Assembly (NCBI GenBank): GCA_020891255.1
Contig: BQFW01000012.1
Coordinates: 1,302,001 to 1,366,000, forward strand
DNA length: 64,000 bases
From: Entomortierella parvispora E1425
Lineage: Eukaryota; Fungi; Mortierellomycota
Direction of reading: 5' to 3'
How positions within the stretch are numbered: the first letter of the stretch is position 1; each line of letters opens with the position of its first letter. This document shows, in pieces, positions 44,007 to 62,500 of this stretch. The notes beneath the pieces are model-generated. The model saw nothing but the letters and a program-made list of their open reading frames with translations, was not told the origin of the DNA and did not search any database. A program made the position numbers and the translations under genes.

Positions 44007-46460
44007 TTAATTGGGATCGGTGGTCCCAATGGGGGCGGCAGGAGGAGGGGGAGCGATAAGGACGGTAGGGCCGCTGGTCGATTTCCTTCTCGCGAGAACT
44101 GGGGCATCAGCAGGGGCGGATGGCGCAGGGCCTGTTCCTCCGTCTTGTCCTCCTTCTCCTGTCGACTGGCTGACGTCGCCTGCAGCAGCGTCACCCTTGA
44201 TGCCTTGTTCTTGTTGTTGTTGTTGTTGTTGATTTTGGGTCGATGGAGCAGAGGAGGACGGCGTCGACAACACAGAGGTGGTCGACAGCGAGAAGGAGGA
44301 ACCCGTCGGTCCAAATTCAGTGACCGACTCTTGAGGGTTGGGAGAATATGCGTTGTCGGTATAATATGAAGGTTGGGAGCTGCTTTGTTGCTGTTGTAGT
44401 TGTTGGTGAGGGTACACCTGCGGGCGTTGTTGTGGGTAATACGCCTGTGATGTCTGATACGGTGAGGGATAGCGGGGCTGTTGCTGCTGCTGAGGATTTG
44501 AATACATGTTCGTCATGTTGTTGTCGGATCGCCTTCGCGTCGTGATCGACGGTGGGATGATCAAGATCGAGGAAGAGGCTGGCCGTGGGTTCTTTGTTGT
44601 CGTCATGCTCGGAGGTCGTCCCACTCCAGCTCCATGGGCATCCCCTCCCTCATAAGCAGAGGATCTTGATACAGCCGATGCTCGTACGGGCTGCTGTTGG
44701 TTCTGCTGGGACGAGGGGCGACCTTCTAGCTCCTCACCATCGTCAAACCTGTCTTTTGGTGCAGGCATAAACGGAGAGCCCAAGTCAAGAGCATCAATCT
44801 CCTCAGCCCAAGCTTCTTTGCCACCACCGGCTGCATTGAGTCCATCGTTTGTGTTGGTGATCTCCTCTTTGTCTGAGGCGGGCGCATCGTGCGAGGACTG
44901 TGCAGGTGGCATTGGATACATTGGACGTCCATTCGAAGAAGCTCCTTGGAAAGACTGTGGATGATAGGGGTGTTGATGTTGAGGCGTGTATGGATACGGC
45001 TGTGGATGATAGTTTTGGTTATATTGCTGTTGTCCAATGCCATTGCCGACGCTAACTGTTTTCGCCCGGAACAGAGGACTTGACTGCTTAGAATTGGAAT
45101 GGGATTGATGATGAGGATAGATATCAGGAGAAAGACTGGAGCGACGACTCAGGTTCACACTTGCTCCTCCACTGCCCCCGCCTTGGTTATAATGAGAGGA
45201 TCCTCCTCCGAGGCCAGGGTACAGGTAGTGCGCATGATGTGAACCCGCTGTTCCACCATAATAATCATCAAAGGAACTGGTCCTAAACTCGCCCGTAGAT
45301 TCCTGAGGTCCAGCCACATAGTCGCCGCTGCCAATGATAAGACTGTTGGAGCGCGTCATCCCTTGGCTCTGCGGCGTATGCACCAGCAATCCAGAGCTGT
45401 TTGCACTTGCCAACAAGCCACTGCTACTTCCGGCACCGCCGCCCGCAACACTTCCAGCCCCATAGACACCTCCTGTCAGGGGCGTTGCCGATCCAGACGT
45501 GCTCCAGTAACCGGATCCACCTCCCCTTGCCCCCAAGGTTGGACTCATAGAGTTGCTTCTCCTTGACAATAGCGCGTTCTGGTGGTGTTCAGACATTTCC
45601 TGCAGCGCGCGACTGATATCCGAGCCATCTCCTGGAGCACCACCAAAGTAACCACCCCCTCTACCAAGGCTTTGGAAGCTCTCCCTTCGAAGAGCGGCCG
45701 CGGCCGCAGCCCCTGCACCTCCTGCTCCGTTGTCCTTTACAAAAAGATCGCCCAATCCGTTGGTCAACGTAGCAGAGGAGGAACTCTTGGAGAAGAGATG
45801 CATTCGTCTCTTGGCGCTTCTTCGCCTGAAAAGACAAAAGACCACTAGTCCCATGCAGGCCAAGACAAGAAAGATCACCACTAAGGAGACCGTCAGCATG
45901 ATCCCTGCATTCGCGTCCGGCTCATTGTCCGGATTCTCGGGCCAATAGTACGGTGTCTCCGAGGGCTCTGCGAGCCCCGTAGTGCTCGGCCTCGAATGGT
46001 GCTTTCTGGTAAATGACTGGACTGTCGTCGTGACGGGGGCGATAGGGTTCGTTTGAGGGATGAGGGGCTGTTGTTGTTGTAGAGGGGGCGGAGGAGGGAG
46101 AGATGCTGGCGCTGAGGAAGGTACGGAGGGGAACAAAGGGATAGTATTATCGGAAGTGGGTGATGCAGGTTGAGGTGCTCTGGGTGCACCCACAATGGGC
46201 AAGGTAGACAACAGGGGAATATTGTTACCATTATTGTTATTGCTCTCAGGAGGTGATGTTGCTGCCAGTGGTGGCGATTGTGGTAGAGGCAGTGCTGGAG
46301 CTGAACCTGGAACAGGAGCAGGAGCTGCTGCTGGTGGTGCGTCATTGTTATTGCCATTGCCCTTGCCACCGTGATTGTTATGGTTGTTGTTATTATCAGG
46401 CTGAGAAGGTGCTGGCGCGTTTTCAGCTCCAGGTGGAGGAGGAGGTTGTGTACCCGCCAT
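44007..46460 (-). CDS. Single-pass membrane protein with Pro/Asn-rich N-terminus and long disordered C-terminal tail, 817 aa
   Basis: Long intronless ORF with one strong hydrophobic segment (GIMLTVSLVVIFLVLACMGLVVFCLF) followed by RRRSAKRR. No catalytic domain recognised. Confidence 0.75.
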   Translation of the reverse strand: MAGTQPPPPPGAENAPAPSQPDNNNNHNNHGGKGNGNNNDAPPAAAPAPVPGSAPALPLPQSPPLAATSPPESNNNNGNNIPLLSTLPIVGAPRAPQPASPTSDNTIPLFPSVPSSAPASLPPPPPLQQQQPLIPQTNPIAPVTTTVQSFTRKHHSRPSTTGLAEPSETPYYWPENPDNEPDANAGIMLTVSLVVIFLVLACMGLVVFCLFRRRSAKRRMHLFSKSSSSATLTNGLGDLFVKDNGAGGAGAAAAAALRRESFQSLGRGGGYFGGAPGDGSDISRALQEMSEHHQNALLSRRSNSMSPTLGARGGGSGYWSTSGSATPLTGGVYGAGSVAGGGAGSSSGLLASANSSGLLVHTPQSQGMTRSNSLIIGSGDYVAGPQESTGEFRTSSFDDYYGGTAGSHHAHYLYPGLGGGSSHYNQGGGSGGASVNLSRRSSLSPDIYPHHQSHSNSKQSSPLFRAKTVSVGNGIGQQQYNQNYHPQPYPYTPQHQHPYHPQSFQGASSNGRPMYPMPPAQSSHDAPASDKEEITNTNDGLNAAGGGKEAWAEEIDALDLGSPFMPAPKDRFDDGEELEGRPSSQQNQQQPVRASAVSRSSAYEGGDAHGAGVGRPPSMTTTKNPRPASSSILIIPPSITTRRRSDNNMTNMYSNPQQQQQPRYPSPYQTSQAYYPQQRPQVYPHQQLQQQQSSSQPSYYTDNAYSPNPQESVTEFGPTGSSFSLSTTSVLSTPSSSAPSTQNQQQQQQQEQGIKGDAAAGDVSQSTGEGGQDGGTGPAPSAPADAPVLARRKSTSGPTVLIAPPPPAAPIGTTDPN

Positions 46461-49115: not shown

Positions 49116-50410
49116 TTATGGGTTGTTGACAAAGTTGAAAGAATAGCCTCCAGAAGTGGGGTCTTGTTTCATCTGAAAGTTGTTGGTCGACAGTCCAAAC
49201 TTGCCCAAGATTGTATTTCCCATGGACTTGAGTTTGGCTAGAAGATCATATCATCATTGAGCATTAATAAAAAACAAAAAACAAAATCTCAATGCAAAAT
49301 GAAATGAAAGAAGGCATACATAGTCAAAGAACTTACCCATCATCTCTTCCTTTTCCTTTTCCAACAGCTGTTTCAAAATCGGTTCCATCCTCTTTAACGC
49401 TTGTTCACTTGTTTGAATCATGGCCCGGTGTTTCTTTTTCGAAGCTTCATCCAGGTCCAGTCTTTGGGGTCTGTAAATCTCTTTTGTATCTTTTGCCTTC
49501 CGTTTGTCCTGCGCAGGGGACCGTCGTTGGTTGACAAATGTCCGTGAAGAGGACGCTGACGAGGGATCGGCTTCAGAGTCTTTGCCTGTTCCTTCCACCT
49601 TTGTCTTTTCGTCGCTGTCCTGTTTCCCCTTCTCATCGCCTTCTTCTTCCTCCTCCTTCTCGGGCTCGGGTGGTTGGATTAGTCCCAGTTCGATCTTCAA
49701 GGTCTCAATCACCTTCAAGTGATCCTCCTTGGCCAGAGTCATGGACGCGAACGTGCCCTGAAGCTCCTCGGCCTGAGCCTTTCTCTGAAGTGCTTTTGTG
49801 TATGACGGATCCAGTTCAAGAGAGGTACTGCAGGCTTCTACAGCGAGGTCATACTCCATGAGTTTGATGTGACAGGCTGCCATGTTGGAGTGATAAACTG
49901 CCCGCTCGGATTTGTATTTTTGTACGTGTTGAGGCGTAGGCAGGTTCTCTGTTGATAGTGATGACTCTGATGATGGTTCTGATGATGATGATGCTGAAGG
50001 CTGTGCTTCTGACTGAGAATGCGATCTTTCCGTCTCTTCCTTTTCGTCGCCGTCTTCAATTTTTGATCCAGCTCCTGTCGCATCAGATCGAGGGACTGGA
50101 CAAGTGGTGAGGGCCAGCTGATAGTATTCCAAGGCTTCCTTGTATTTCCCAGAACCAAAAGCCTGATTTCCAGTGACTTTGTACCGAGTCGCCTCTTGAA
50201 AGAGTTCCTATGAATGGGCATGAAATATATGAGTTTTTAATGGGGCCTAAAAATGCAGAAGAAGAAAGAGTATAGGAAGGATCATGGTACCTCGTCCTCG
50301 GAGAGCTCTAGACCCTCGAGCTGCGAGGTGATATCAGAAGGATTGGCGGCCTCGCTTGTCTGGGGTGGTTGAACAACCTCCTCCTCAATGATTTCTTCAA
50401 TAACGGCCAT
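49116..50410 (-). CDS. TPR co-chaperone, TTC1-like, 3 exons
   Basis: TPRs (YKVTGNQAFGSGKYKEALEYYQLAL; YHSNMAACHIKL; YTKALQRKAQAEE) and the TTC1-type tail EMM|AKLKSMGNTILGKFGLSTNNFQMKQDPTSGGYSFNF. Confidence 0.9.
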
Positions 50411-51814: not shown

Positions 51815-54800
51815 TTACTGACGCTGTTGATGGTATTGTTGTTTTGCGTACAGGCTTGTAAAGTTCCGGAGACACTGCTCCAGTTCCTCCTTCATCAAGG
51901 GCTTGCTGATGTAATCATTCATACCCGCCGCCAAACACTTTTCACGGTCGCCCGGCATCACACACGCCGTCATGGCAATGATGTACGGTCGATCGGTCGT
52001 CGTGCCCGAAAGGTTCTTGCGGATATAGGTCGAAGCATCCAACCCGTTCATCTTGGGCATCCAAATGTCCATAAAGATGAGGTCAAAGGGTACAATCCGG
52101 TGTTCGTGATGGGGGCGTGGGTCGTTTCCAAAGGAAGTCGTCTGTGTAGGTGCCGTAGGAGGGGTCGTGGGAGGGGTCGTAGGCGTCATGGTAGACGGCG
52201 TTGTTGCGGAAGGAGTGGCGCCTTCGAGACTTGCCAGGGATGCGCCCAGTCCCGAATCGGTCATATCCTGGCCCCGGCCTCGGTTATCGGACGGGTATCC
52301 TGAAGAGAGGGCCGTTGCCGTGTTCAAAGTGCCCTGCTGCAACTGCAGGGCCGCAATCTTCTTCTCGATCAATTGCACTGCTTCCTGGCCATTGTTGGCC
52401 GTCTCGGGTTCTACCCCGAGTCGAGCCAGCATCTTGGAAGCCACCAACAAATTCACAGGGTTGTCGTCCACAATCAGGACCTTCATCTTGGCCATCCGCC
52501 GAGCTGTGGAACTCGACGCGGCCGCGACGGCAGCCAACGATGGAGACTCGTACCCCTTCTTGGCCGCATTGGACGCTCCCACACCCCCGGCAAGGAGATC
52601 AGAGCCGGAAGCTGCCGAAGAGGCAGCTCCCTTCTTGCGTCGTGCAGCAGCAGCTGCGGCCATCGCTCCTCCTCCTCCTCGACTGTGTTGGGGAATAGAG
52701 TACCTTCGAGCGGTGGAAGAGTCTACAATATCATCAAAAGGAGATCTCGGTGACTTGGGCTCGACCAACTGCTCTTCTTGTTGCAGCGGCAGCTGTTTTC
52801 CCATTTCGACACCAGGCGCTGATGTGGTCCGAGAGCGACCATTCCTGTTGGGCTCTACCCCAGTCTCTGCAGAAAAAGGCGCCTCCGCAGCTCTCGAAAC
52901 AGAGTCTTCCCCCTGGTTAGAGAGGCTCTTTACTGTGGGGCGATTCACAACATCGGGTGCAAACGTCAGACTGTTGCCCATAGCCTTGGAGGACGCTGAC
53001 GCTTTCACGCGCGCAGGCGGAAGGAGGGTCATTGTAACGTCCTTGAGTGACCTTTGGAACTGCAATGCCGGTCCTGCGACTGACAGGTCCTGCTGGCGGT
53101 CAACCAGTTCTCCTTCGTCTTCCTCGGGCGTTTGCGCCAGGGGAGGTAAGGGCATATAGATCGGATACTGAGCCAAAGTCTGCAGGACCTTTGAGTGTCG
53201 AATCGGCTTTGTGAAATACACTAGCTGAAGGAAGACGTCTCCAGCCTGAGAAACGCGTGGAGTATTGTTGGTCGACGACGCCGACGTTGCACCGACATCG
53301 CCCAAAACGCCACCATTCAAGCTAGGGCGACGAACAGACGCGGTCGTGGAATCTGTATCGCTGCTGCTGAAATAGCTGTTCCGCTTGACAGAGATTGCTG
53401 GCGAGGATGCTCCAGTGGAAAGATGATCGACACTGCTGATACTCTGCTCATAAAACGTAGTGGGCTGTGTGTAGGGCGTCAACAGGTATCCAGAGCCAGT
53501 GACACTCGAGCGACCACTGATACCGACACCATGTCCAGCCTGGCCTGTTCCCAATGGCATCAAATTTCCTGTCGGTGTTCGGTCCAAGGCAAGCGAGGAC
53601 GTCGAAGAGTCGGCATGATGCTGATACATGCTTCCGTAGGTAGGGATCTTGCTTAAGGTACGATCGATGGTAGGTCCGGTTGTAGAATCAGACATGCTTA
53701 CAGGGTTGCTTTGCAGAGGGGGGGATCGGGCTGACAGGGGTGCAATCATTGACATCTCATCACCCGTGTCGCTGCTGGAGATTCTCTCGCCGCTCCATCG
53801 TGAGCCCTCTGGACGAGCATGGCCGTGGAAGGAGGTGGAGGCGGTAGCGGCGCTACAAACATCTCTATAGTTCTTGAATAGAACCACAGGGATAACAGGC
53901 ACCAGCTGCGTTTCCTCCTTGGGAGCTGCAGAAGCCTGAACTGATGCAGCAGCATTGCGAATCACATCCAAAAGACCCTCGGGCGTGCACGCGACGGAGC
54001 CATTCAAATCTGTCTCGACGATCAACGCGTCCATCTTTTCCTGGATACTTTGAATCGTACCATCGGCCCCAGGTTCTTGCAAATAAGGAACGACTTGATC
54101 ACTCTGCAAGATCTTGACCTCGGTCATGTTCCAAGAGTCTGCTCTCATCTTCCATGCTTCCCGACCCATCTTGCAGTCGTCCACAATGACGATATGTTTC
54201 TTGCTCAACTTGGGGAGCTCAAACTGCTCCCCATAGGTGCGACAACCCACTGGGCTGTCAAGGACCAAGTTGACATAGAACGTGGATCCTACATCGGGTG
54301 TACTGTCCAACCAGATGGTTCCACCCATCATCTCGCTCAACCGCTTGCTGATGGCCAATCCCAACCCTGTACCGCCGTACTCGCGAGTCGTGCTCTCATC
54401 TACCTGAGAAAAGCTCGAGAACAACTTGTCGAATCGATCCTCGGGAATACCAACACCTGTATCCTTGACTGAGAAAACTAGCCGCACGGGCCTGGTTGGC
54501 AACACGGCTGCACATACAGAATTGACCCTTGCGAGTCTTTCGGATTTTGGCAAGTTCAAAACGTCCTTTTCGGTCATGACAGCGTCCACCGACTCTTTGA
54601 GAGACTGCGAACCAAAAGCAGGAGGTAACTGAGCCTTAGACTCGGAGCCTACATTCTTCTTGCTAGTAGACCCGACTGTGTCTGCTCCAGTGATCGTTGT
54701 TGGTGAAGAGGCAGATGATGGTGGCATCAGTCGAGTTGGGTCCACAGTTGAATCCAGTTCTGACTCACTCTCGAACCGAACCTCTTGATGAGGTTCGATC

Positions 54801-57800
54801 GACACCGAGACGATGATGGAGCCCTCCTTTGTAAACTTGACTGCGTTGCTCATCAGATTCAACAAGATCTGGCGAATCCTGGTCACGTCGCCCATGATCT
54901 CCACGGGACAGTTGCTGTCAATCTCATAGACAAGACTGAGATTCTTGGCCATGGCTTGAGCACTGATCAGGTTCACGGCCGATTCCATGACAAAGCTTAG
55001 ATCCAAGAGTCGATTCTCCAGTTTCAGATTGCCAGACTCGATTTTTGAAAAGTCCAAGATATCGTCGATGACTGTCAATAGCTGGTTGCCTGAAGACTCG
55101 ATCGTCTCTGCGCACTCGGCCAGTTCCGGATTTAGCTTGGAATCGAGCAAGATACGGGACATGCCAATGACAGCGTTCATAGGCGTTCGGATCTCATGAG
55201 ACATGTTGGCCAAGAAGTTTGACTTTGCAGTCGCTGCAGCCTCGGCTCCCTCTTTGGCCTTTTGGAGGTCGACCAAGAGTCTGTGGGTCCTTGCTCGCTC
55301 TTCTTCAAGCTCAACCGTTCGCATCTGAAGATTTCGGGTCCTGTCTCGGACAAGATCCTCCATGTCATTGCCGTACCTTTCGAGCATGGCAGCCATGCTG
55401 CTGATAAAGTCACTTGATTTGTGGGGGTTGATATCGTTGATGCGGGCCAGCATGGCTGTGAAGTGAGGTCGTGAAAGAGGATCCCGGGAGAGACAAAGCT
55501 GGATGAGATGGTTCATCTGTTCGATGTTCATTCGGTCCTCTGTGGAAAGTGTAGAGTCATCAGTGCTCATGAGTGTTGGTCGGAGATCCTGTTCCTGCAC
55601 CTGCTGAATAATGTTGGGCTGCTCTGGGTAGTCGTGGTATGGCGAACGACGGGTCAGAATCTCGTTAAAAATGATTCCAGCACTATTTTTTTTAAAAAAA
55701 AGCCCTTGGTTAATACCCATCGGCTGCTACAATAAAGCAACACTATTCAGACAAGAGATAAGAGAGGGGAGAAATCTCACTGTACCTGTAGAGATCGCCT
55801 CTCTGAGTTCCCACGGCCTCGTATCCTCCTGTCTTTCTTAAATGCAAACATTCGGGTGCGGTCCAAAGCAGGGGCATGGCTTCAGATCCGTCAAGACTCT
55901 GTTCAAACCCAGAGTAGTCCATTACATCCGACACGCTGCCATACGAGCCAGCGCCTTGGGAGGGTGAGCCAGAACTAAAGCGACTGCTGTTGCTGCTGCG
56001 ATGTTTTCCAGGTGACGAAGGGGAAGATGTACCGGCAAGAATCTCTTCTCCACCTACACTCATAGCCCACTCTGCATCGTCAGCACGAGTAATACCCGAA
56101 GAGCCGGTGGCTTCAAGATCGCCAGTACGGTTTTCATAATCCCACGCCTCCTTGCTCTTCCTGCGGGTATCGCGCCCAAAGCTAAAGATACCCTGAGACG
56201 AGGGCTGGTGCTCCACCTGAGAATGTTCCGGATCCGAGAACCAGGACAAGGGGCCAGTACGTTGAGAGCCATTCTGATCAATCTGTTGTTGGCTGGACGG
56301 TTGCAGGTTGTTGTTTTGCTGTGACTGGTAGAATTCATCCAGTCCATAGCCTGCAATCTTGAGCTCCCATCTGGACGAGATCAAGCAGTTCATACTCGTC
56401 AAGCGCCCATGAAACCCAATCTTGGACATGTGCAAAAACTCCATTCCTCTGCAAAGATCCTGCATGAACGAGAACTTGAAGAGCCAGGTGAATTTGTGAT
56501 CCATGTTTGCCAACACTGAAGAGAGAGTACCCTTGGGAAGATATTCTAAAAGACATAAAAAAAAAGAAGTTATCAGCGGTTGGTCCAGCCATACGCCACG
56601 CAAAAAGCTCGTACGATGATCCATACCTGTAACAACGCAGATGTTGGGCGCAGTTATACAAAGGCCCACAAACTCGACTAGCTTTGGATGACGAAGCTCT
56701 CGCATGTTGTAAATCTCCCTGCGAAGCTCAGATGTGACAGCCACCTTCTTGTATCCAATCTTTTTGATAAAGACAGGCATGCTGCGCCAAGTTCCAACTG
56801 CAGACGATCCACGCTTCATGACCAAGGAGAACTGACTTCCGCTCAGTGCCTGTTGAGCAGACTTTGTGTTGGCACTGAAAGAAAGAAAGAAAAGAAAGGA
56901 GTCACTCCCTTAGTACGATATTCATCCGTGCATTTCTTGCGATTGATCACCAATCTCATCTGCTGTGGATAATCATAATTGGGGACTTACGAAGATCCTG
57001 AGCGCGCGCCAACACTTGAGACTGGATTGCTTCCGGTAGGATTGCTCGTGTGTTTGGACGAATGAGGCGACTCGACATCGCGGTTCTCTGGTGTGGAAGG
57101 GTCTATAAACTCCTTTTCCGCAAAGGGCTGATCCACGTCATCGAGGGTGATGGCAGGAAGAACAAGACCTTGGAGGCCCTTTCCAGCACTCATGCGGGGG
57201 GTACCAAAAGTTCGATCAGGTTCTCCTCCGATACCGCTGTACAGGAGCTTGGCCAGGTCGAGCTGCCACGAATCATCGTTCAACATCTTTTCGGCCAAGG
57301 AACGCTTTCTCTTGAACCAACATCCAAACACCAACAGACAAGCTGCAGTTGCAACAGAGACAGGGATCAAGATGGCCATAAGCAAGGTAGAGGTGCTCAC
57401 TATTAAAAGTAATACAAGAAAATGTGTTAATAGCTGCCATCTCGTTTGGACAGTACTGCGGTGAAATGGTACGTGGTTGCTTACTCTTTGAGGACGAGCG
57501 ACAAGAGTCGTCATCACAAATGGTGCAGATAGTTTGGCCGTCCCCATCCGTGGTATCTCCAGGGCTACAGGCCGTGCATTGCGTGACATCCGTTTGGTTA
57601 CTGAAGGAGCCACGAGCACATCGTGTGCATACTGACATAACCTTGATATGTCCAGCAGCGTCCATGCAGAGCATAGAGTTGGAATTCGACGAGGACGGAG
57701 TATCAGTTAGAGTGCCTGAGGAAATAAGTGAAGAACCGGAAGACATGCCAAGCGTGGATGAATAGTACGAGCCAGCATCACAGGCGTGGTCGACGACCTG

Positions 57801-60227
57801 AGGACCAGTGGCAATAAGGTTGTTGAAGATGTTGGTCCTGTTCGGGAACATGAGACGGATCGACATGCTGATCACGGCATTGAATCCTTGCAGATATTGC
57901 TGAGTATCCAGTATTCCCGTCACTTGGAGATTGTGAGCAAGCGAATAAAGACCCTTGGGAGAAACGCCTAGTACAAATACTCCAGGTGATAGCGAGTCGA
58001 CCGATCGAGAAAAGGCTGGTACGGTCTTGAGAAGGCTTTTGTTGGTACTCTCAGATCCATCCGTATTAGGTGTGGATACCAAACTAGAGTACTGGATCTT
58101 CTTGAGCTGGGGATACAGAGAATCCACGATAGAGTATAACGGCAGAGATGTACACACGATCGAGTCAAAGGCCAACTTTGAGCTAGAGGTAAAAGCGGCC
58201 AGGATAGGATTCATCGTAGAGTTTCCGGACGAGGTGTCATCGCGGACATCTCTACTCCGGGACTGAGTGGACAGGAGCTCACTCGTATTATTGATGTTTG
58301 CCAGATCTGACGAATTGGCGGGGATAGTCAGCATCATGTCGGTCAGATTACCGACTTTGGTGGCGCCAAAAACCTGAGTTAGGAAAGAGTGGAGCTGAGA
58401 GCAGTGTACAGTTTGCCACCATGGTCCGTTTTCTTCCACAAGGCAGAGAGGCACGAAATATCCTGAAGTCAAAATCTGAGAGGCAATTGTGCTTCCGATT
58501 GTGTCATCGCTTGGTCCAAGAAAAACAGCGCGAGAAGGCAGAGAGGTCCAGTTAAAGACGGTACCGAGGCCCATCAAAGGAGTTGTTGGGGATAAAACAG
58601 TATTGCTGAGCAACTCTTCAAATTGAGCCTTGTCGGCCAGGGATACCACAACACTGTTGACTCCGGTGTACGGTCCATAGCCCGTCGTAGAGGTGCTGTT
58701 GGTGAGGGAGGGTGCTTGCAACTGTGTTTGAATCTGATTCAGTTCCGTCATTGAGGTAGCCGACACGGTATCCCATCCAAAGAGCCTTGCTGCTTCAACC
58801 AGTCCACCGAGGGAATCCTTCCATCGAGTGTTTTCAAGTGGGACGTTGCGATTGAGAACGACCGACGTCTTTTGTTGCTTTGCAAATTCAATGAGGCTTG
58901 TTTTCTGATCCAGTGCATACTCCTGGTCAATGTTGGTGTTATCCAAGAGAGATGGTCCTGTCCAAAGCGTGTTCTCGGACAGATGCTGCCTTGTTGACAC
59001 TTGCAGAAACAACTCAAAGACAGGCAACGAGCCTTGAAGGTATTGGGATTGTGAGATCGCAGCCACAACGGCGCCAGTTTTGATGCCCTGTACCACATCT
59101 GCATTCACGTCAAAGGTTCCGATCCACATGGTACCATTTCTGCCAATGACAGCTGGCACGCCCTGTCTGTGGAGAGACACATTCACCGCCATGTTGGTAG
59201 TTCCCGTGGAAAGGGCGACAATGGAGTCGATGCTGGTGTGGTTAGCCAAATAGCCCACAACAGTCTCGTAGTTTTCAGGGGAATCGATGTCGAGGGGCCC
59301 AATATACACCATCTTGCTGCTGACAAGTGTCTGTGTGATGTTCATTCCTCTGGCTTGAAAAGCTCTCATAATACCCGTGCAACGATCCATGTAGGTTTGG
59401 ATATTGGAAGATGCCAAGCAAACAAAGTCCTTTGCACCTAGATGTGTCAAGGAGTCCATTGGTTAGAGTGTGCTATCAGGTGGCCTTCTTTTGTCTGCCT
59501 CAATGGCAAGTATTGGCGCGTGTACCTTTGTCAAGAAGTGTGTTTCCAATCAGTTCACCGGAAGCAACTTCGTCCTGAAGAACAGAGAGGATACCCAGTT
59601 GTTTCGCGGTTTGGATGCCTGCATTCATGACCACAATAGGGAATCCCTGACGACTTCTTCGCGCCTCTATGATAGCACCTGCAATGTCAGAGGTCGGGAT
59701 GGTTACAATCATACCATCGTACTGTCCAGAGTTGACGGCGTTGCGGATCTGCGAGACCATGGTGTCCGAATTAAAAACGTCCCCCTCTGGTGAGATCCAG
59801 TCCACTAGGGTGCCCGTCATGTTGGCAGCATCTACAGCTCCTTGACGGACAACGTCCCAGAATGCAGTGGTGCCTAATCCATCATGAATTGCATTAGCCA
59901 GCTGTTTACCCATGGCCTGTATATAGAGTCATGAATGAAAAGGCAGATCATACCATGGTTAATGGCGACAAGACGAACTGGACCATCTGAAGGCACATAG
60001 GACTGGCGTCCGCTATAGCCGGTCATTGTAGTAGGGTCGCATTGATCGATTGCCGACAGGTTCATAGCCACTGTATTGCTCATGTCCTGCGTATTAAAGC
60101 GAAGACCATCGGACTGTACTGGGAATGATGCAGCGCCGCTCAGCAAAGACAGGGGAGTGAGCAATAGCAACGCAATGTAGATCCATGTCACAAAGAGTGA
60201 CCTTGGGCACGATCCTGAGGAACTCAT
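51815..60227 (-). CDS. Transmembrane hybrid histidine kinase: signal peptide, 2x periplasmic-binding-protein fold, Cys-rich stalk, TM, receptor-guanylyl-cyclase-type pseudokinase, signalling helix, HisKA, HATPase, split pseudo-receiver, receiver; about 2,600 aa, 7 exons
   Basis: Six GT-AG introns (about 59874-59953, 59439-59523, 57403-57490, 56877-56990, 56545-56626, 55684-55787) join the ORFs in frame. H-box [18 protein letters not shown]; N-box [14 protein letters not shown]; G1 VKDTGVGI; G2 [10 protein letters not shown]; receiver [10 protein letters not shown]...[13 protein letters not shown]...YISKP. Confidence 0.92.
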
Positions 60228-62137
60228 CCGCGGGATTATGCAACTATTTTGAGGCTCTCGTAGTTTCCGAGAGAAGGATTGGGTGGTGGCCATTGAGGGT
60301 ATTAGATGTAATATGTTTTTGTTGCGGCTTTTTCTTGTGCAATACACCTCTGGGGAACAGGGTGTTGAACCCTGCAAGGCTCTAGTGCACTGAGAATGGC
60401 GGCGTCGAATCCCAGATCGCGTGTCGGCAATGAGTGACAGTGAGGATGAAGTTTGGTGTCGATGCTGAGGGCGCTGTTTTTGAGGAGAGAAGTTGCTTAG
60501 AGATGAAGACAAGAGAGAGCGCAGTGAGGCGAGGAGGGAAGGTACACGATGTCGTTGGGTCGGCACTGGTCGTCTATGAGTAGATGTAGGGGATGGTATC
60601 AGCGGCCAAGGGTGGTCGTATTGGTGATTCCTATGACGGTGGTGCTCCTGTCTGTGATGGATAGGGGCAGGAACCATTGGTGGAGAAAGCGTGAGGAGAG
60701 TTGTCTATGCAAATGGGAGCCTGTGTTCAAGCAAGAGTCAAAGAGAACAAAGGCAGATGGCGTGTTAGCAGCAGACAGAGAAGGGGTGGCCGGGCCGGAC
60801 GGGGGAAAGAAAGGTCCAAGTCGCATGCACGCAAATCGGGCGAGCAGATCGAGCCATGGTCACACAATGAACCCAATAATGATGATCAAATGAACAGGGA
60901 AGGGTGGAGGAGCCGTTGTTTGTTTGTCAACTACAACCAACGGCCCTGAACCAAGATTGGAATCTACGGGCAGAGCGTGGGTAAGGAAGAAGGACGGAGA
61001 GGATTCCTTTCCGTTGTTGCCCCTCGTCCCTGCATCCTTGGCTCGTTGTCTCTCACTCTCATTCCCTTTTAACAAGTCATGAAATGAACGACCAAGTGCT
61101 CAGAAAGGAAGAGGCACAATGGTAGGAAGCCATCACCCGGATTCTACACCTAATGGGATGGTGCATGCCATATTTCAAACTCCAGGAAGACAAGGCCTTC
61201 TTTTTGAGAGCAGTAATCAACCAACGTGAGCACATTCCATCCCGAGGACCACGAACAGGAACACGGTTGCGGGTCCAAACGACAGTAATTAGAGTCAGCA
61301 AAAGATCACGGACATGAACTAGCCGAGAGACTAACTGTCGGAAGAGGATAAAGGGTGGAAGGTATCGCCAGCATATACGGCTTTGAAGAAGCATGTCTCG
61401 TGAATGAAGAGACACCGAGTGAAATATAAGGGAGCTGCAGAGCCATTGAGATGAGTCTGCTGCAGAGAATTGAGCCGAGGGTGGGGAGCCAGTTTGTGTC
61501 TGTCGGAGACACCTCGGCGTTTGTGTGTGTGATGGGGGTGTATTTGCGTGCATATGCATGCAGTGGAAAGAAAGAAGACTGGTGAAGAAAAGAAAAACAG
61601 GAAGAGGTGACCGAGGGTCATTCGATAGTTTGCAGGCAGGGCACGAGCGAACGGTCTGCTGCGGTGTGTGGTTGTTGGAGGGCGAGGGAGAGGGGCAGAA
61701 AGGGGGGAAGGAAGAGGGGAGGAGGGAATGGTAAAAGTGCAATGCCAGAACACCATGCACCACTGGGTTTCCAAATTGGTTCTAGTGTGATCAGATTCGG
61801 CCCAATGTTGGCTGGTGCCAGGGAGGTTGGATCCGCAGGTTGGGATGAGGAGGAGAATGGAGTGAAGGACAGGGAGGCAAAGGCGAGGGAGGCAAGGGGG
61901 GAGGGGGAGGGGGGGTCGGAATGAAAAAAAGTGAAAAAGTGAAAAAGTGAATTGCATGCATGGACGAAAGGATGGCAGAGTGGCGCAAGACAATAGCGAG
62001 ACATACGTTCTGACGGAAGGTATGAAGGTTGAGAGGGACAAGAGGGGAAGCGGTGAATGAGAGAAAGAGGGTTCAGCGTGTTGTAGGCAATGAATGAACA
62101 AGAGCGAGTCGAGAGCGTCCAGGGAGTCAAGAGGAGG

Positions 62138-62310
62138 GAGGAGGAGGAGGAGGAGGAGGAGGAAGGAGAAAGAAAGAGAGTGATCAAGAAAGTGAAGACT
62201 AGGGGCGGAAAAAGAAACTTGAGAAAGCAAAGCAGAGAGAGAGAGAGAGAGAGAGAGAGAAGGGAAAAGGGGCGGACGAATGAATGAATGAACGAATGAA
62301 ATGAAAATGA

Positions 62311-62356
<46 letters not shown>

Positions 62357-62500
62357 CCGACAGCCTGGGATGGAGAGAGAGACACACTGATAAAAATATG
62401 GTTCGTTCATTTGTCAGGATGTGGGATGTGTGCTGTCTGGTGTGTTTGTGTGCCTGTGTGTCGGTGTGTGTCTGTGTGTCTGAATGAATGAATGAATGAA
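62138..62500. repeat. Compound microsatellite cluster: (GAG)n, (GA)n, (AATG)n, (AGAC)11, TG-rich repeats, (TGAA)n
   Basis: (GAG) run about 62138-62164, (GA) about 62234-62258, (AGAC)11 at 62313-62356, (GAAT)4 near 62481-62497. Confidence 0.85.

Follow-up and report, generated by a model that had tools for sequence, protein, structure and literature searches.

What kind of receptor sets an extracellular binding module and a kinase-like domain of the sort found in animal receptor guanylyl cyclases (RGCs) in front of a fungal histidine kinase (HK)? Most fungal HKs are cytosolic and without a known ligand, and the question is raised by a gene in a stretch of 64,000 nt from Entomortierella parvispora E1425 (contig BQFW01000012.1, positions 1,302,001 to 1,366,000), hereafter the window, to whose numbering all coordinates refer. 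The gene occupies 60227..51815 on the minus strand, where all of its features described below also lie, and its product consists, in order, of a signal peptide, two type-I periplasmic-binding-protein (PBP) domains, a Cys-rich stalk, one transmembrane (TM) helix, a kinase-homology domain (KHD), a long helix, a HisKA/HATPase core and a receiver. It probably encodes a single-pass, presumably dimeric, cell-surface hybrid HK of the Mucoromycota-specific group XVI, working as the receptor proposed in the last section.

A first-pass annotation of this DNA had already put signal peptide, ectodomain, TM helix, kinase-like domain, helix, HK core and receiver in this order, and Pfam, hydropathy and translation place each element where that annotation had put it. 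Its seven-exon model was matched by an independent assembly, in which the exon junctions were set by frame continuity and GT..AG borders and which again gave seven exons in frame. The H-box His that it had picked out (55196-55198) is His1493, the receiver Asp (52067-52069) is Asp2536, and the RGC-like linker leading into an intact HK is present at aa 1427-1450. Pfam matched the HK, receiver and kinase-like domains, and AlphaFold models resolved the ectodomain into two PBP folds.

The architecture itself is not new. It occurs in full, by Pfam, in about 50 proteins, the full-length models from two subphyla numbering over 40, and only in Mortierellaceae (Podila, Linnemannia, Mortierella, Entomortierella, Haplosporangium, Dissophora, Lunasporangiospora, Actinomortierella, Gamsiella, Modicella and Benniella) and Mucorales (Mucor, Parasitella, Thamnidium, Cunninghamella, Lichtheimia, Apophysomyces, Phascolomyces, Zychaea, Radiomyces, Absidia and others); database searches returned no member from outside these two groups. 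A quick maximum-likelihood tree (SH-aLRT), used for within-family clades only, separates three strongly supported clades: clade A, clade B of the Mortierellaceae, in which there were further duplications, and one formed by the Mucorales. The window protein falls in clade A (99% support), its nearest relative being an L. exigua protein with 76% identity in the core; over the whole protein, the nearest orthologs available are about 50-55% identical, and the low-complexity inserts differ.

The group to which these proteins belong, MS-HKII, was reportedly defined by Defosse in 2015. MeHHK11 (MS-HKII, Morel2|1153927) and MeHHK12 (MS-HKII) of Mortierella (Linnemannia) elongata AG-77, also called MelonHK11 and MelonHK12, are entered in Text S1 of Herivaux 2017 (PMC5285503), and MS-HKII was renamed fungal HK group XVI by Kabbara 2018 (PMC6324907), whose running text reports it only from 'Mucoromycotina' and gives no function. 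As far as the Text S1 entries go, both proteins have a domain order identical to that of the window protein from signal peptide to receiver; MeHHK11 agrees with it in ectodomain, TM helix, KHD and helix, with near-identical helix, H-box and KHD motifs, and MeHHK12 is a clade B protein. From these sequences the window gene is evidently the ortholog of MeHHK11. HK groups are distinguished by a group-specific H-box signature together with the combination of N-terminal domains (PMC4965123), and the window protein shares the family H-box string with MeHHK11 and MeHHK12, in addition to the domain order and the 99% clade support, which places it in group XVI (MS-HKII).

The first-pass annotation had left undecided whether this architecture was among the surveyed Mortierella HK groups, which it is, and had considered that it might prove to be an already characterised receptor class; in the sources consulted it is catalogued but functionally uncharacterised. 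The running text of the two group XVI papers (PMC5285503, PMC6324907) discusses neither function nor a relationship to RGCs, and a literature search with coverage short of figures and Defosse 2015 yielded no text on RGC homology, tandem PBP domains, function or ligand of the group; the annotation, too, knew of no described function or ligand. The window gene is an additional member, an ortholog, of a catalogued and functionally uncharacterised HK family. Automated names already given to members include 'RGC/RGC protein kinase' (Podila verticillata, Mucor circinelloides), 'Receptor-type guanylate cyclase gcy-13' (M. alpina) and 'guanylate cyclase' (UniRef).

Homology of the kinase-homology domain and helix to receptor guanylyl cyclases

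The KHD (aa 1010-1424, 55403..56831) is of RGC type by Pfam, BLAST/profile comparison and motif table. It is interrupted by introns 5 and 6, contains a low-complexity insert (aa 1156-1298), and its Pfam match, PK_Tyr_Ser-Thr, is spread across exons 5, 6 and 7. The KHD core of exon 6 alone matches human NPR1 (GC-A) at 8e-14 and GC-C at 5e-10, followed by LIMK1 (2e-8) and BTK (1e-5), and the KHD tail with the linker matches NPR1 residues 738-806 at 6e-7. A profile built from 16 family segments covering KHD and helix finds NPR1 at 9e-65 and GC-C at 7e-42, then CTR1 (2e-28) and B-Raf (4e-27), and its alignment with NPR1 extends through the helix (..YANNLEELVEERT..) up to ..MEQYANNLEELVEERTQA. Also, when a Mucorales KHD was used as query against a collection of 5.8 billion proteins, the Mucoromycota family was followed by animal receptor guanylyl cyclases (GCs) at 5e-29 to 2e-25, the next kinase appearing at 7e-9; the animal GCs recovered carry ANF_receptor, PK, HNOBA and cyclase domains. 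Judged by these comparisons, the KHD and helix of the window protein are truly and specifically homologous to the animal RGC module.

Like RGCs, the window protein has a KHD followed directly by the conserved dimerisation/signalling helix. BLAST/profile comparison shows this helix (aa 1425-1482, 55229..55402) to be a homolog of the RGC dimerisation helix as far as about aa 1470. The signalling-helix (S-helix) concept is well established, and the family shows a strict geometry in this region: both motifs, LE[KRQ]Y and the phospho-His, were located in 24 members from all three clades, and in 23 of these they lie 62 residues apart, a constancy which points to rigid helical coupling. In pairwise BLAST of the window protein with a Capitella GC, homology ends only some 18 residues short of the cyclase domain. 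Since RGC homology runs to near the cyclase domain, the seam between RGC-like and HK-like sequence lies inside the coiled coil, roughly at aa 1450-1480, which is what an exchange at the signalling helix would be expected to give. The helix is further marked by a single 7-residue gap, that is one heptad, in the BLAST alignment with the annelid GC P0281 (window aa 1447-1453, about nt 55316-55336, against residues 852-853). Such a one-heptad difference between the fungal and the annelid GC helix would preserve helical register.

Shared by animal RGCs (NPR1/GC-A, GC-C and the annelid GCs P0280 and P0281) and the fungal family are thus the pseudokinase KHD (HGxL.S.NC, [DG]YGL, LW.APE) and the homologous helix (..LEKYANxxExLVxxRT..), and the animal proteins are likewise single-pass receptors with an ectodomain of type-I PBP fold. 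Unlike them, the fungal proteins have a HisKA/HATPase/receiver output, and the class III cyclase domain PF00211, present in the animal comparators, was not found in the window protein, nor did a scan of four full-length homologs reveal it. That an HK took the place of a cyclase, the direction of change proposed by the first-pass annotation, is conjectural. Database searches found no fungal relative pairing this ectodomain or KHD with a cyclase.

How the module came to be shared can be read in two ways. The KHD and helix may, tentatively, represent an older opisthokont transmission cassette, which Mucoromycota would keep on a His-Asp phosphorelay behind a bacterial-type sugar/polyol sensor. Horizontal movement of the RGC-like module from animals to Mucoromycota, or the reverse, would be in keeping with a family found only in Mortierellomycotina and Mucorales whose nearest KHDs outside those groups are those of animal RGCs (31-37% identity); this is rather doubtful, as the moderate identity and the three deep clades within the family point to an old residence in the fungal lineage, and neither the introns nor the ectodomain bear any relation to their counterparts in animal RGCs.

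A tandem ectodomain of bacterial type

The first-pass annotation had proposed an RGC-like chassis for the whole receptor, which held for the KHD and helix but not for the ectodomain. By its modelled folds and Pfam matches, the latter is not of RGC type; it consists of tandem bacterial CUT2 sugar-binding-protein folds on a Cys-rich stalk. Its matches are to PF13407/PF00532 and not to PF01094 (ANF_receptor), and no natriuretic-peptide-receptor ectodomain is among the listed top 50 structural hits. Because the ectodomain is a tandem Peripla_BP_4 with stalk, only the intracellular half of the protein is RGC-like, and extracellular likeness is limited to the broad fold class. Membership in the RGCs proper was rejected, given the lack of both a cyclase domain and an ANF_receptor ectodomain.

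The membrane-distal domain, PBP-1 (aa 84-390, 58890..59978, with introns 1 and 2 within), has a complete type-I PBP fold of the CUT2 monosaccharide-binding kind, as judged from Pfam PF13407, AlphaFold2 (AF2) modelling and profile comparison with the PDB. In the window protein its Peripla_BP_4 match is split by intron 2 into profile positions 11-116 (exon 2) and 138-247 (exon 3). An AF2 model of an ortholog ectodomain (pLDDT 80, pTM 0.84) places two alpha/beta PBP domains one after the other, with a Cys-rich tail; its PBP-1 aligns with 4ru1 over 282 of 288 residues (Z 22.3, 28% identity), the structural neighbours that follow being RbsB, GanP, a glucose/xylose binding protein, XylFII and LsrB. 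The second domain, PBP-2 (aa 391-760, 57780..58889), is a degenerate type-I PBP fold according to AF2, structure comparison and hhalign: the AF2 model of window aa 391-858 (pLDDT 79) contains a second complete PBP-I domain with Z 21.2 to 4ru1 at 14% identity, and hhalign relates PBP-1 to PBP-2 with a probability of 98.6% (E 7e-16), which argues for an internal duplication.

The two copies differ in their binding residues. PBP-1 keeps a near-invariant Arg226 (59382-59384) and an invariant Asp317 (59109-59111), both aligned with Arg and Asp in 4ru1, which correspond to the Arg/Asp pair that binds sugar hydroxyls in ribose-binding protein and LacI. Both are lost in PBP-2 according to its hhalign alignment with PBP-1, so that PBP-1 has the fold and the Arg/Asp pair of a CUT2-type Peripla_BP_4 domain and PBP-2 has the fold only.

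The cleft of PBP-1 would on this evidence bind a ligand that is small and polar, a monosaccharide or polyol being the likeliest; of the steps proposed here, this assignment of ligand class is the weakest. That the ectodomain senses something other than a sugar (an amino acid, an autoinducer-like furanosyl compound, a metal chelate, a protein or a cell-wall polymer), or is a mere dimerisation scaffold, is unlikely: the type-I PBP fold does serve many ligands, LsrB/LuxP (AI-2) and LivK are among the structural neighbours and PBP-2 has lost the binding pair, but the top structural neighbours are all monosaccharide or polyol binders, the Arg/Asp pair, which holds sugar hydroxyls in RBP and LacI-type proteins, is invariant or near-invariant in the family, and the family PBP-1 profile is far closer to the CUT2 monosaccharide-binding 4ru1 (1.8e-41) than to the next structure in the PDB (1e-15). 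4ru1 is Acel_1806 of Acidothermus, an actinobacterial CUT2 binding protein; lying 26 orders of magnitude nearer the profile than other solved structures, it may point to one particular bacterial donor lineage or class of ligand. Its own ligand may be an inositol.

A profile made from the ectodomain alignment recovered nothing beyond incomplete members of this family, and no relatives with other outputs; the hits of a feature search with the ectodomain were all generic Peripla_BP_4 clusters of bacteria, with sub-threshold scores.

Between PBP-2 and the membrane lies the Cys-rich stalk (aa 761-858, 57486..57779), which is ephrin-receptor-like, TNFR-like or NCD3G-like by a weak match to Pfam PF07699 and by its Cys columns; in homologs it is matched by PF07699, PF07562 and PF23091, and the Cys columns are invariant or near-invariant. 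The single TM helix comes next (aa 862-885, 57320..57391), and after it the basic stop-transfer motif KRKR. The hydropathy scan of the window protein gives exactly one TM helix (aa 864-882), and every full-length homolog has one at the equivalent place.

At the N-terminus, a signal peptide is predicted at aa 1-33 (hydrophobic core 11-29; 60129..60227) from hydropathy, the predicted start codon and similar leaders in homologs. Mucorales and Dissophora homologs begin with the same kind of hydrophobic leader, and most family homologs start directly there. The frame of exon 1 is also open upstream over 60228-60677 (minus strand), with in-frame ATGs near 60293 and at 60677, and the JGI model of M. 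elongata MeHHK11 has a low-complexity N-terminal extension of about 190 aa ahead of its hydrophobic leader. The predicted start codon at 60227 is the weakest point of the gene model.

Catalytic residues, phosphorelay domains and gene integrity

In the KHD of the window protein the beta3 Lys (Lys1032) is kept, HRD reads HGR (Arg1125) and DFG reads GYG (Gly1143). The rest of clade A has the same motifs as the window protein, including the retained catalytic-loop Asn. Mortierellaceae clade B has Arg at beta3, HGD for HRD, a retained catalytic-loop Asn and GYG for DFG; the Mucorales keep the beta3 Lys, read HG[R/S/C] for HRD, have lost the catalytic-loop Asn and read DYG or NYG for DFG. In the family alignment a complete catalytic set is found in none of the three clades. 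Losing any one of three residues (beta3 Lys, HRD Asp, DFG Asp) is enough to class a kinase domain as a pseudokinase, and by this standard the domain is one, its catalytic inactivity being predicted from its residues. The complementary losses among clades point to an early loss of catalysis, with the KHD kept for a structural or allosteric role, and that each clade lost different residues suggests relaxed selection on catalysis after activity had been lost.

RGC KHDs are established pseudokinases. A catalytically active domain, which would make the protein a dual Ser/Thr(Tyr)-plus-His kinase similar to Dictyostelium DhkG, is accordingly very unlikely: the window protein retains the beta3 Lys, alphaC Glu, catalytic-loop Asn and APE motif, and clade B paralogs retain the HGD Asp, but both catalytic Asp residues are replaced in the window protein, no clade has the full set (clade B combining Arg at beta3 with GYG, the Mucorales being without HRD Asp and Asn), and the nearest relatives are the RGC KHDs.

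The domains that follow have the residues expected for a phosphorelay. HisKA (aa 1483-1548, with His1493) and HATPase_c (aa 1590-1806, with an insert of about 100 aa) together span 54257..55228 in the Pfam assignment, and the receiver (aa 2395-2606, 51857..52492, Pfam) contains an 83-aa low-complexity insert. Pfam scores are 5e-22 for HisKA, 3e-27 for HATPase_c and 4e-20 for Response_reg. The N, G1, F and G2 boxes are all readable in the translation, and the receiver has the acidic pair DD (2403-2404), the phospho-Asp2536 and the conserved Thr and Lys. HisKA with a phospho-His, a boxed HATPase_c and a fused receiver of the DD..D..T..K kind make the protein a hybrid HK of predicted catalytic competence. 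The linker between HATPase and receiver (aa 1807-2394, 52493..54256, from translation) begins with a receiver-like stretch followed by Ser/Thr/Pro/Ala-rich low-complexity sequence, and is partly conserved in orthologs. In all, low-complexity sequence with much Ser, Thr, Pro, Ala and Gln forms four long inserts (52493-54256, 54491-54787, 55884-56312 and 52097-52345), which break up the KHD, the HATPase and the receiver and make up the HATPase-receiver linker; they explain most of the size excess over the Mucorales homologs, which have about 1,700-2,000 aa.

The coding sequence is 7,860 nt long, has a single terminal stop and specifies 2,619 aa in exons 60227-59954, 59873-59526, 59437-57485, 57399-56991, 56874-56627, 56545-55786 and 55682-51815. 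The six introns measure 80-116 nt each and all six are of the GT..AG type. Exon 7 is one uninterrupted frame from KHD subdomain IX through helix, HisKA and HATPase to the receiver, and since this open frame covers both, the KHD and the HK cannot be separated into two genes. An annotated Dissophora globulifera protein of 2,565 aa aligns to the model in a single collinear high-scoring segment pair (aa 49-2223, 54% identity), and Linnemannia, Lunasporangiospora, Podila and Actinomortierella proteins align similarly across all six junctions, orthologs having 2,416-2,622 aa.

Comparative support came also from four sequencing runs under the species label of the source, which are genomic contigs of a divergent strain without splice joints. 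A contig of about 88% identity aligns in five blocks, all inside exons 4-7. Four of the alignment breaks fall within a few bases of exon borders (55681/55783 for intron 6, 56547/56620 for intron 5, and 56870 at the 5' border of intron 4), the remaining one removes the low-complexity insert of exon 6, and the gaps between blocks hold sequence of comparable length that is unrelated. Many of the listed differences are spaced at multiples of three bases, which fits substitutions at codon third positions. A pseudogene was ruled out by this spacing and the open frame. In two of the runs (X4/X5) the locus is only about 88% identical and intron sequence is unrelated, so the species label spans clearly divergent lineages.

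Taken from one exon across KHD C-lobe and HK, collinear orthologs and exon-only conservation in the related strain, the locus is a single gene in sequence terms. A model artefact in which two adjacent genes, one for a PBP-pseudokinase and one for a cytosolic hybrid HK, were wrongly joined is barely credible: several database homologs are split or truncated to PBP and kinase only (P0277, P0278, P0283) or HK only (P0002-P0009) and the model is a prediction from genomic DNA, but the truncated homologs are mostly flagged 'partial' or lie on short contigs, the same order recurs in the full-length models of both subphyla, and exon 7 is open throughout.

A neighbouring open reading frame (ORF; 49254-50132, minus strand) has a TPR repeat (1.5e-7), and the adjoining ORFs of 817 aa (44007-46460) and 359 aa (61331-62410) have no Pfam match. 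None of the three shows signs of a functional link to the receptor.

Proposed signalling and its significance

In the proposed receptor, closure of PBP-1 upon ligand binding would be relayed by PBP-2 and the Cys-rich stalk, acting as a rigid relay, to the TM helices of a dimer. By analogy with natriuretic-peptide receptors, the dead RGC-type KHD would serve as an allosteric, possibly ATP-binding, coupler. The fixed-length helix would run directly into the DHp helix and set the autokinase/phosphatase (DHp/CA) state, and phosphate would pass from His1493 to Asp2536 of the fused receiver, and from there to an Hpt protein and Ssk1/Skn7-type regulators.

Several points weigh against this proposal. 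Its ligand class derives from the fold and two conserved residues, and amino acids, autoinducers and peptides are ligands of PBP-I domains too. That the receptor dimerises, that the KHD binds ATP and that phosphate is transferred are all predictions, and activity might be lowered or altered by the big low-complexity inserts within KHD, HATPase and receiver. An upstream start, as in the JGI model of MeHHK11, would turn the leader into a first TM helix and thereby give a classical two-TM HK topology. Also, the single-gene model was built from genomic DNA and sequence comparison.

Known systems offer partial parallels to the proposed receptor. The folds of PBP-1 and PBP-2 (Z 22 and 21) are those of bacterial CUT2 monosaccharide/polyol binding proteins (4ru1, RbsB, GanP), identity between 4ru1 and PBP-1 being 25-28% with the Arg/Asp pair common to both, and the partnership of XylFII with the LytS histidine kinase is a precedent for such a PBP gating an HK. 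Unlike in bacterial CUT2 systems, the fungal PBP is covalently fused, duplicated and stalk-tethered to a eukaryotic single-pass receptor, with no ABC transporter. A protein-kinase-like domain N-terminal to a hybrid HK is also found in group X HKs (S/TKr and GAF, as in C. albicans Chk1) and in Dictyostelium DhkG (TyrK-like and HK), a likeness of kinase-like domains drawn by description only; those proteins are cytosolic, without ectodomain or TM helix, and group X has GAF. Membership in group X was rejected, since the window protein has no GAF hit and its signal peptide, ectodomain and TM helix mark it as not cytosolic. Class C G-protein-coupled receptors and the trypanosome receptor adenylate cyclase, as here, place a Venus-flytrap PBP on a Cys-rich or short stalk before the membrane, and homologs of the window protein give weak NCD3G hits; the membrane and output modules differ, and the likeness is one of fold class.

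The architecture has been in catalogues since 2015-2018. What the analysis adds is the quantitative RGC homology of KHD and helix, the seam within the helix, the clade-complementary catalytic decay and the duplicated CUT2-type ectodomain. If the reading of KHD and helix as an older opisthokont cassette is true, group XVI would comprise the first ligand-gated, single-pass, pseudokinase-coupled receptor HKs, and would constitute a natural experiment in which an RGC helix is able to drive either a cyclase or a DHp domain. An RGC-homologous coupler, a helix of fixed length and binding residues only in the distal PBP together form a testable model of transmembrane signalling, and the findings bear on how output domains are exchanged at signalling helices. 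Because the extracellular binding domain is large and well folded, ligand screening is possible for group XVI. The family is present in Mucorales, including agents of mucormycosis, and absent from animals, and its function may therefore matter for medical mycology.

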